Source of the DNA: Gekko japonicus
Taxonomy: Eukaryota
DNA: 64,000 bases
Direction of reading: 5' to 3'
NCBI RefSeq assembly: GCF_001447785.1
Contig: NW_015168075.1
Coordinates: 62,001 to 126,000, forward strand
Below, one piece after another: positions 29,672 through 32,236 of this stretch (positions within the stretch are counted from its first letter, which is position 1; each line of letters begins with the position of its first letter). The notes below the pieces were generated by a model that searched no databases, was not told the DNA's origin, and was given only the letters and a program-made list of their open reading frames with translations. The translations under genes and the position numbers were made by a program.

Positions 29672-30108
29672 TCATGGATCACTGCCTTGTCATGGCGAGG
29701 GGGCTTGCATGGTTTGATGAGGCTGTGGGCTATGTCGTGGAGGGCCACTCAAGACGGACAGGCCACAGCAGAGAACTCAGACCAAGCGTGATCCCCTGGA
29801 GAAGGAAATGGCAACCCACTATAGTATTTTTGCCAAGAAAATTCCATGGACAGTATCAAAAGGCTAAAAGATATGATGCCGGAAGATGAGCCCCTCACAT
29901 CGGAAGGTGTCCAATATGCTACTGGGGAAGAGCAGAGGACAAGTACAAGTAACCCCAGAAAGAGTGAAGCGGCTGGGCCAAAGCCGAAAGGACGCTCAGT
30001 TGTGGATGTGTCTGATGGTGAAAGGAAAGTCCGATGCTGCAAAGAACAATACTGCATAGGAACCTGGAATGTAAGATCTATGAATCAAGGTAAGCTTGAC
30101 ATGGTCAA
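29672..30108 (+). mobile_element. BovB 5' end (part of chimera)
   Basis: Begins TCATGGATCACTGCCTTG like the 5' end of the 24430-25118 copy; the ORF reads to WNVRSMNQGKLDMVK and homology then stops. Confidence 0.93.
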
Positions 30109-30985
30109 GTCCTGGCTGATTGAGTGTGGGAGAGGAACGGGCATTGTTTGACTGGGATTGCCTGTAATTGAGAGGAAGTGGAAGGGGCATTGTTTTGCCT
30201 GTGATTGAGTGCCTGGGTGAATTTGAATTTGAATAGCTGCTGCCTGACCTCTGCTGGGGGAGGCCTCTATTTAAGGAAGCACCTTGCCAGAGGCAGAGGA
30301 GACCAGCTGAGCTCTGAGCAGGAGCAGGAGAGAGAGCTGTGAGAGAGGTGAGTGGGTTTCTTTTACTTGCTTTCAGCTGAGAGAATTCAGCTAAGGATAT
30401 TTTGTGGGAAAACTGTGTTTAGCAGTGTGTGGAAGCACTTAGAGTTCTTGCAGAGTCCTGGCTGATTGAGTGTGGGAGAGGAACGGGCATTGTTTGACTG
30501 GGATTGCCTGTAATTGAGAGGAAGTGGAAGGGGCATTGTTTTGCCTGTGATTGAGTGCCTGGGTGAATTTGAATTTGAATAGCTGCTGCCTGACCTCTGC
30601 TGGGGGAGGCCTCTATTTAAGGAAGCACCTTGCCAGAGGCAGAGGAGACCAGCTGAGCTCTGAGCAGGAGCAGGAGAGAGAGCTGTGAGAGAGGTGAGTG
30701 GGTTTCTTTTACTTGCTTTCAGCTGAGAGAATTCAGCTAAGGATATTTTGTGGGAAAACTGTGTTTAGCAGTGTGTGGAAGCACTTAGAGTTCTTGCAGA
30801 GTCCTGGCTGATTGAGTGTGGGAGAGGAACGGGCATTGTTTGACTGGGATTGCCTGTAATTGAGAGGAAGTGGAAGGGGCATTGTTTTGCCTGTGATTGA
30901 GTGCCTGGGTGAATTTGAATTTGAATAGCTGCTGCCTGACCTCTGCTGGGGGAGGCCTCTATTTAAGGAAGCACCTTGGCAGAGG
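30109..30985 (+). repeat. 346-bp tandem monomers (2 full + 1 partial) of a CR1-type 5'UTR
   Basis: Units start at 30109, 30455 and 30801 with GTCCTGGCTGATTGAG; copies look identical by eye; they lie upstream of the CR1 ORF1. Confidence 0.92.
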
Positions 30986-31212
30986 CACGAGCCTCTGGCA
31001 CGAGCCGAAGGGTGAGCTAAAGGGCTCTTTGCCTGTGGCTCTTAGCCTAGGGACTCTTAGACTAGGGGCGCTGTAAGAAGCCCAAAAAGAGCCAGAAAGA
31101 CAAGGCCCTAGGCTCTTTGTCTTTCCCGTAAAATAATTTGACTTGATAACAAAACCCACATAAATACCAAGGGTTTAAAAGGGGGATTATATTTATTTAT
31201 TTTAAAAGAATT

Positions 31213-32223
31213 ATGAAGCCAGAATGCCAGCAGGGGGTTGGGGGCTATCCAGTGTTTTGCACGGAGTGTCACATGTATGACTATCTGCCCACTGGGCAGA
31301 AGTCTTGGGTGTGTCCTCGGTGCAAGGAGCTCCTGGTTCTCAGGGAACGTGTGTGCTCCCTTGAGGCCAAGGTGGCTGATCTGGAGAAGCAGAGACAGTC
31401 AGCTAGGCGCACAGAAAAGACTCTCGGGGACTTGTTAGCTTCGTCCCACTCTGGATCTGGCAGCCCCGCTGCTGTCAGGGAGCATGAGGGTCTAGGGGAA
31501 ACAGGGCACCGTGCTGAGGATAAGGGGAATGTGCCCTCAGAAGGGACCTCTTCCCCAGCTGGTGAGCGGCTCTCCTTTTGCACCAAGGAACCATCCCTGA
31601 GCAGGGTGGGAGGGGGGCTCTTGGTAGTGGGTGATTCGATCCTTAGGCAGGTAGACAGCTGGGTGGCGAACCCACGTACTGACCATATGGTGACTTGCCT
31701 GCCTGGTGCGAAGGTAGCAGACATTACACGTGTTTTAGATAGGCTGGTAGATAGTGCTGGGGAGGAGCCAGTGGTCGTGGTGCATGTCGGCACCAACAAT
31801 GTGGGGGAATGCAGTCGTGAGGTCCTGGAGGAGAACTATGGCTGCTGGGCAAGAAACTTAGGTCCAGGACCTCCAAGGTGCTGGAGAAGACTCTTGAGAG
31901 TCCCTTGGACTGCAAGAAGATCAAATCAGTCTATCCTAAAAGAAATCAACCCTGACTGTTTCCTGGAAGGCCAGATAATGAAACTGAAGCTCAAATACTT
32001 TGGCCACCAAATGAGAAGGGGGCACTTACTGGAGAAGACCCTGATGCTGGGAAAGATTGAAGGTCAAAGAAGATGGGGACGGCAAAGGATGAGCTGGTTA
32101 GACAGTATCATAGATGCAATGAGCATGAAATTGAGCAAACGTCAGAGGACAGCGGAAGACGGGAAGGCCTGGCGTGATCTGGTCCATGGGGTCGCGAAGA
32201 GTCAGACTCGACTGTGCAACTAA
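31213..32223 (+). CDS. chimeric ORF: CR1 ORF1 (Zn finger/leucine zipper + partial SGNH esterase) fused to BovB C-terminus
   Basis: CTEC..CPRC + LRERVCSLEAKVADLEKQ; VVGDSILR, CLPGAKVADI, VVHVGTNN; then CWRRLLRVPWTARRSNQSILKEI..LEKTLMLGKIEG. Expression is not shown. Confidence 0.6.
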   Translation: MKPECQQGVGGYPVFCTECHMYDYLPTGQKSWVCPRCKELLVLRERVCSLEAKVADLEKQRQSARRTEKTLGDLLASSHSGSGSPAAVREHEGLGETGHRAEDKGNVPSEGTSSPAGERLSFCTKEPSLSRVGGGLLVVGDSILRQVDSWVANPRTDHMVTCLPGAKVADITRVLDRLVDSAGEEPVVVVHVGTNNVGECSREVLEENYGCWARNLGPGPPRCWRRLLRVPWTARRSNQSILKEINPDCFLEGQIMKLKLKYFGHQMRRGHLLEKTLMLGKIEGQRRWGRQRMSWLDSIIDAMSMKLSKRQRTAEDGKAWRDLVHGVAKSQTRLCN

Positions 32224-32236
32224 ACAACAACAACAA
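31877..32236 (+). mobile_element. BovB 3' end with (CAA)n tail (part of chimera)
   Basis: Matches the revcomp of 11278-11620; ends GGGGTCGCGAAGAGTCAGACTCGACTG..AAACAACAACAACAA. Confidence 0.93.

Follow-up and report, generated by a model that had tools for sequence, protein, structure and literature searches.

How does a long interspersed nuclear element (LINE) come to carry, between its own two ends, the core of a LINE of a different clade? The question is raised by a composite retroelement at positions 29672-32236 of a 64,000-nucleotide stretch of Gekko japonicus DNA (contig NW_015168075.1, positions 62,001 to 126,000 of the forward strand), referred to here as the window and numbered from its first letter. 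The composite consists of three blocks arranged head to tail, all on the plus strand: a 5' end and a 3' end of what we take to be BovB and, between them, the 5' part of a CR1 element with its first open reading frame (ORF1). According to one study, ORF1 modules have reportedly been exchanged among LINE lineages, and the composite could be a copy from a mobile hybrid family, a one-off product or an artefact of assembly. We find that the composite is real in the assembly. It has the look of a one-time accident during reverse transcription or repair, and no indication of a new mobile family was found. Our favoured reading, to which we give a probability of about 0.4, is a tripartite chimera, present as a single copy or at very low copy number, that arose in one BovB retrotransposition event with two template switches.

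Architecture of the composite

Self-matches, Tandem Repeats Finder (TRF) and protein searches confirmed the parts, order and strand given by a first-pass annotation made from the sequence alone, which had described BovB ends wrapped around a CR1 array and ORF1. The BovB 5' arm (29672-30108, plus strand) comprises the 5' untranslated region (UTR) and the first 88 codons, up to the start of the endonuclease domain, and is 93.4% identical over 438 nucleotides (nt) to a minus-strand copy at 25113-24676. Both sequences have the same first base and unrelated flanks and thus define the canonical BovB 5' terminus, here from two copies only; the shared start had been annotated before, with the 5' end of the independent copy placed at 25118 instead of 25113. 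That copy continues into the endonuclease frame, and its continuation of 96 amino acids (aa) matched 8000 proteins at ~80-85% identity, 34 of the best 120 of which carry the AP-endonuclease family domain PF03372. The 88-aa frame of the 5' arm is aligned to its last residue by 94 of those 120 listed proteins. Since the proteins that match the continuation also cover the arm to its last residue, the arm truly ends four codons after WNVRSMNQGKLD; the first-pass annotation had placed the break in the endonuclease motif. A Pfam search returned nothing over the cut-off for either arm or for the 96-aa endonuclease piece, and a PDB search with the latter gave no match; the Atlas search gave no more than a lead to PF03372.

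The arm is followed by a CR1 5' UTR array (30108-30987, plus strand), in which TRF found a 346-bp monomer repeated 2.5 times. The first two monomers agree at 346/346 positions, the partial third differs at 1/188, and each contains one TATTTAA motif (at 30268, 30614 and 30960). The unique part of the leader (30988-31212) includes a short 14-bp tandem repeat at 31021-31067 and leads to the start of ORF1 at 31213. This frame is truncated (31213-31880, ~222 of ~300 codons) and encodes a zinc-finger-like N-terminus, a coiled coil and an SGNH esterase. Its first 222 aa gave 10 protein matches among 2259 candidates, all of ~190-340 aa and most with PF13472; the relatives are SGNH esterases of ~300 aa from the lizard Hemicordylus capensis (61% identity) and from turtles, the best match having 73% identity. 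The only significant PDB match was 4c1b, an 'ORF1-encoded protein' (E=8e-7), and a Pfam search of the ORF1 piece gave nothing over the cut-off. Alignments of four relatives by tblastn end at 31839-31860, after residue 207-221 of 300-307 aa, and the homology extends to 31880 when read in a shifted frame. The relevant part of a 2026 survey of vertebrate CR1-group elements describes esterase ORF1s, the type found here, as limited to CR1 and L2 and as the sole type of ORF1 that can be identified in either, with ORF1 missing from the L2 of lepidosaurs (PMC13343379); the same part mentions that some elements without ORF1 have arrays of 1-5 repeated 5' subunits, each of 100-500 bp. With the esterase ORF1 restricted in this way, CR1 is the fitting label, though the clade-defining reverse transcriptase (RT) is absent from the piece. 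The earlier description of a 'CR1 promoter array' thus stands as to CR1, by way of the esterase ORF1; the basis for a promoter is solely the TATA-like motif in each monomer. Joints seen in other CR1 copies (30169-30960 and 30330-30960) connect monomer 1 with the array's end over 3 or 19 other letters, so that monomer number and 5' UTR structure differ among copies.

The CR1 piece ends at 31880 inside ORF1. It contains no ORF2 with APE and CR1-clade RT domains, and tblastn found the C-terminus of ORF1 nowhere else in the window (CR1 ORF2 itself was not searched for). A CR1 3' UTR characteristically has a microsatellite-like end; here the piece adjoins the BovB 3' arm directly. The piece accordingly has no 3' end, tail or target-site duplication (TSD) of its own, as had been noted before and is borne out by the sequence and by the ends of the tblastn alignments. 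The BovB 3' arm (31877-32236, plus strand) holds the last 114 codons, a stop codon at 32221-32223 and a (CAA)n tail at 32224-32236, which is a BovB-type 3' end. An open frame of 336 aa (31213-32223) starts in ORF1 and, by way of a stretch read in a shifted phase, passes into the frame native to the BovB C-terminus. Among 1.84 billion representatives searched, 77,615 proteins match this fusion frame at E<=0.001, and nearly all of the best 150 do so from residue 220-224 on, that is, from the junction. Among these 150, four matches start at 186-198 by the listing, a pattern that P0064, an ordinary BovB protein in another library, also showed on alignment, and P0006 and P0007 match ORF1 only. Residues 223-336 are 60-80% identical to thousands of proteins, and the named matches include a Bos mutus RT-domain protein with RVT_1. 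The single long frame for endonuclease and RT is reduced to the 88 N-terminal and 114 C-terminal codons with neither domain between them; the composite is BovB-derived, not an autonomous BovB.

Junctions and reading frame

Both junctions can be placed to the base by comparison with the parent families. At the 5' junction, 29 contigs of set X1 and 47 of set X8 run past 30108 with endonuclease sequence as in the copy at 25113, and the A at 30108 is the only base that fits both parents (1 nt). At the 3' junction, 18,202 raw whole-genome reads (set X22) fit rightwards from 31877 and are ordinary BovB to the left (agreement 0.92), which assigns the GGTG at 31877-31880 to BovB. In its native phase the CR1 frame reads ...LLGKKLRSRTSKV and ends in the same GGTG, and CR1 relatives have K-V there. 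GGTG therefore fits both parents and forms a microhomology of 3-4 nt, so the microhomology suspected at this junction in the first-pass annotation is real. None of the reads or contigs listed, a minor part of 5325 loose ends and 614 joints, bridges either junction. An RNA run (X21) shows a repeat-wide signal with ~0 depth in the unique flanks and no junction reads among those listed; it gives no locus-specific expression.

The reads also place the fusion frame in context. An extra A follows 31839 in 1500/1538 X22 reads, and the composite thus has a private 1-nt deletion that shifts the frame. The X22 reads have A at 31836 in 1517/1535, T at 31838 in 1516/1530 and G at 31852 in nearly all cases, so that four private changes of the composite fall within 17 nt (31836-31852), 28-44 nt from the junction. 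Loss of the one nucleotide brings ORF1 into phase with the BovB C-terminus and thereby creates the 336-aa frame; on our reading, with the family sequence at the deletion site the frame would stop soon after the junction. The exact 336-aa sequence is absent from the protein collection, and the frame is probably an accident. Nothing in the sequence demonstrates promoter activity, protein production or mobility of the composite.

Copy number

The X22 set amounts to ~1.9 billion letters, and the depth in unique-flank bins (n=3) is 0, 0.3 and 1.6, giving ~0.6-fold coverage. Summed depth is ~2700-3300 over the 5' arm, 290-620 over the monomers, ~2400-2600 over ORF1 and ~22,000-31,000 over the 3' arm. 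Just inside the 5' junction, at 30112, it drops to 19 + 18, or ~37, versus ~3000 in the 5' arm, and by our own arithmetic ~15 reads are expected there from reads that start inside the first monomer. By this depth at the 5' junction there can be no more than a few tens of copies, and a single copy fits as well. Neither junction was found a second time in the 64-kb window, and both junction 22-mers had 0 matches in metagenome contigs. In a word-indexed protein search with the junction region, the best 120 of 8000 scored proteins, which cover 39-87% of the region, include no hybrid, and the widest of them, P0064, is the ordinary BovB mentioned above. There was likewise no hybrid protein among the 150 best of the 77,615 representatives, where the top match, P0131, consists of two BovB tails; the check for hybrids by alignment covered P0064 and P0131. 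The silence of the protein libraries is weak evidence, as they hold almost nothing of this genome (the best ORF1 match is at 73%). The proposal in the first-pass annotation of a non-autonomous hybrid family mobilised in trans thus finds no support in the window, in two protein libraries, in the metagenome contigs or in the depth of ~37.

Flanking sequence and target site

The earlier observation that no convincing TSD is present holds insofar as a clean TSD is lacking; TATATCAAA, a direct repeat of 9 bp and a candidate TSD, does however bracket the unit. Its right copy (32237-32245, plus strand) lies directly 3' of the tail. Its left copy (29641-29649, plus strand) lies within the head of a tRNA-type short interspersed nuclear element (SINE), 22 nt before the BovB start, and is ambiguous as a TSD. 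In two other copies the SINE homology continues over the following three bases, and the first 3 nt of the 22-nt spacer (29650-29671) accordingly fit the SINE end; the spacer is otherwise mostly unique, with 1 match in the window at up to 3 mismatches. A match of at least 9 nt starting no more than 6 nt from the downstream start occurred in 0.19% of 20,000 resampled window pairs. Either chance or a genuine TSD accompanied by extra 5' nucleotides could account for the repeat. The tRNA-headed SINE is present in four copies that are 75-82% alike (29388-29652, 10817-11094, 37531-37796 and 52958-53187); its read depth is ~20,000 versus ~1 in unique DNA, and the reads show (GAA)n beside one end.

Two further BovB insertions in the window have perfect TSDs. 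At 8177-8084 (minus strand), a 66-nt BovB tail fragment (8163-8098) is flanked by the 14-bp TSD ATTTCAACCAGGCG, so that very short BovB insertions with clean TSDs do occur here. At 25129-24419 (minus strand), the copy used above for comparison is part of a BovB 5' fragment (25118-24430) that has five extra C, continues from nt 1 to ~684 and ends inside the endonuclease region. It has no 3' end and is bracketed by a perfect 11-bp repeat, ACCCAATGTAC, that is found in only these two places in the window, and has the appearance of a TSD-flanked, 3'-truncated LINE insertion primed inside the RNA. A (CCTT)n microsatellite lies just outside this fragment, at 25468-25508.

Origin of the composite

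The double template switch by BovB RT that the first-pass annotation had offered as one possibility is our leading reading, though it is not demonstrated and a two-step origin from a resident BovB stands beside it. The order of events and the RNA intermediates, which we infer, would be as follows. BovB RT would prime on the 3' end of a BovB RNA and copy ~356 nt; the nascent complementary DNA (cDNA) would re-anneal via GGTG to a CR1 transcript inside ORF1; copying would proceed to or near the 5' end of the CR1 RNA, through the leader and the 2.5 monomers; and synthesis would return to the BovB RNA at nt 437 and continue to the BovB 5' end. The colinear sense parts, the outer two being the genuine termini, 5' and 3', of a single LINE family, argue for this reading, as do the microhomologies of 3-4 nt at the 3' junction and 1 nt at the 5' junction. 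The BovB 3' end is the last of three head-to-tail parts in the same orientation, as is the case in template-switch chimeras. Copying from an internal site towards the 5' end of an RNA would yield a CR1 piece that has its 5' end and lacks a 3' end, tail and TSD, and the TSD-flanked, 3'-less fragment at 25118-24430 suggests that internal priming onto BovB RNA happens here. For the rice blast fungus (Magnaporthe), the available portion of one study describes switches at specific template sites, with double switches yielding tripartite chimeras (PMC2104539).

Elsewhere in the window, a BovB 3' fragment at 11619-11278 (minus strand) is nested in another interspersed repeat, with no clear TSD seen. 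It begins no more than ~2 nt from the point at which BovB is broken in the composite, a coincidence for which the slope of X22 depth gives a chance estimate of 1-2%, and RT may favour this point, ~356 nt from the 3' end of BovB, for stopping or switching. Variants frequent among organism A reads (14-73%) and rare in organism B contigs (< ~2%) are present in both the BovB arms and the CR1 piece, with lineage-specific letters at 29939 and 32161 in the arms and at 31315, 31353, 31572, 31600 and 31629 in the CR1 core. It follows that both parents were recently active in the same lineage, as recent lineage-specific subfamilies. At the five sites in CR1 ORF1, the letter of 98-100% of organism B contigs is present in 27-57% of organism A reads and the composite has the alternative, which points to a CR1 subfamily that expanded after the split of organisms A and B.

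Several observations weigh against a single event with two switches. The shared truncation point is known from a single further copy, the fragment at 11619, and was spotted post hoc. A clean TSD directly at both ends is missing, in contrast to the perfect 11- and 14-bp TSDs of the two other BovB pieces, and the reads listed include no bridging one. The CR1 piece begins 160 nt upstream of the first TATTTAA, unlike a TATA-driven start. It also looks younger than the arms, its two full monomers being identical; differences from the majority number at least 6 in ORF1 (4 of them at 31836-31852), at least 8 across the 437 bp of the 5' arm and at least 7 across the 358 bp of the 3' arm. The argument from age is weak, however, as these counts are lower bounds and all parts derive from recent lineage-specific subfamilies.

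A two-step origin from a resident full-length BovB is a serious contender, if a somewhat less probable one. In one version, a break in the BovB would be patched by endonuclease-independent reverse transcription of a CR1 RNA, primed at GGTG by the broken BovB end and entailing the loss of ~2.3 kb of BovB; in another, a full-length CR1 would insert at BovB nt 437, and a deletion of ~6-7 kb from CR1 ORF1 to the BovB 3' region would then be joined at GGTG. The apparent youth of the CR1 piece would be explained in this way, as would the four private changes near the 3' junction, a clustering expected near error-prone joining. The piece also shares with endonuclease-independent L1 insertions its 3' truncation, junction microhomology and lack of TSD and tail, and the accessible portion of that study reports target deletions at 18/21 loci as well (PMC1920257); the chimeric L1-BovB of cattle has, in the part of the report concerned, been interpreted as a LINE inserted into a LINE (PMC6036668). 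Such an origin nevertheless needs a rare event inside one full-length BovB copy, in the same orientation and sparing both termini, it leaves the coincidence of the BovB breakpoint with the 5' end of the copy at 11619 unexplained, and its second version, given the identical monomers, requires the insertion as well as the large deletion to be very recent.

Far less probable is a mobile non-autonomous hybrid family whose BovB ends are mobilised in trans by BovB and whose cargo would be a CR1 promoter array and a frame derived from ORF1. The BovB 3' end is the presumed recognition site of BovB-type enzymes, and the composite has that end, a complete 5' end and a 336-aa open frame; the depth of ~37 against ~15 expected leaves room for up to a few tens of copies. 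The open frame exists solely through the private frameshift, however, and at most 14-18 of ~1535 reads lack the consensus letter at 31836 or 31838, the composite's own letters being among them. The junctions are found once in the window and their 22-mers not at all in the metagenome contigs, hybrids are missing from the best 120 and best 150 proteins, and the exact fusion frame is unrecorded. That this lizard lineage has a small, young family of hybrid LINEs, with the composite as its founder or as one of its copies, seems to us slightly more doubtful still. An assembly artefact, in which high-copy repeats were wrongly joined, we regard as the least probable of all. All three parts are high-copy repeats, the X1 contigs at 31836 all have the family letter instead of that of the composite, and the bridging reads or contigs that would speak directly to it are missing among those listed. 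Contigs drop rare variants, however, so that the X1 letters do not show absence, and an artefact would need two false joins at 1-4 shared bases each that by chance restored the order and strand of BovB, whereas repeat-driven misjoins usually occur in long shared sequence. The candidate direct repeat, moreover, brackets the whole unit.

Other explanations were considered and rejected. Splicing of a nested precursor would require GT..AG ends, which are found at none of the five cut positions within GGTG (the CR1 side beyond 31880 being inferred from the K-V-A-F of relatives). A 5'-truncated BovB inserted in CR1 would be followed by the remainder of ORF1, and the tail ending at 32236 is followed by an AT-rich flank; for a CR1-BovB chimera inserted in an older BovB, there is no BovB endonuclease sequence after the tail. 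Dating by the share of sampled words per run was dropped, as the shares fit more than one split of words between CR1 and BovB.

Discussion

The composite adds to a known kind of element, the LINE chimeras. In the parts of the literature available to us, the closest counterparts are the template-switch tripartite retroelements WEIRD/Mg-SINE/MGL of Magnaporthe and B2/U6/L1 of mouse (PMC2104539), which likewise have three RNA-derived parts in one orientation, the 3'-most being the LINE's own 3' end, and whose switch sites in the fungus are non-random. They differ in that here one LINE provides both the first and the third template, so that the product resembles a LINE with a foreign core, and in that a second autonomous LINE, from a different clade, provides the middle one. 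The Magnaporthe and mouse elements are also described there as having repeats of 14-16 bp, whereas the direct repeat flanking the composite is not clean (PMC2104539). With the endonuclease-independent L1 insertions, as far as the portion of that study at hand describes them, the composite shares a 3'-truncated piece that has no tail or TSD of its own, microhomology and loss of target DNA (PMC1920257). Those L1 pieces are heavily 5'-truncated at 18/21 loci, however, and the CR1 piece keeps its 5' end (PMC1920257); the element studied there was L1, and here it is CR1. Like the chimeric L1-BovB of cattle, the composite joins BovB to a second recently active LINE of another clade, but the cattle element is presented in the accessible part of its description as a plain nested insertion that keeps two RT domains (PMC6036668), and the composite has lost both RT regions. 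What it retains, in contrast to the cattle chimera, is just the ends, the leader and part of ORF1. HAL1 is an ORF1-only derivative of a LINE, and the composite resembles derivatives of this type in being LINE-derived and carrying ORF1 with no RT; it differs from them in that there is no evidence of amplification and in that its ORF1 is truncated and frame-shifted.

The exchange of ORF1 modules among LINE lineages has been reported, in the part of the survey that treats it (PMC13343379), and such events are rarely caught in the raw. The composite is a fusion, young and cleanly resolved, between two LINE clades that were active together, and its junctions can be read at base level. As a single copy, it is one more example of the mosaics that are made by template switching or break repair, and it would gain greater importance only if further copies or a version with an intact ORF1 exist. 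Were it to belong to a hybrid family after all, then BovB, which has no ORF1 of its own, would have captured a CR1 promoter array and ORF1 module between its own recognition ends, and this would be a live case of module exchange between LINEs of different clades.

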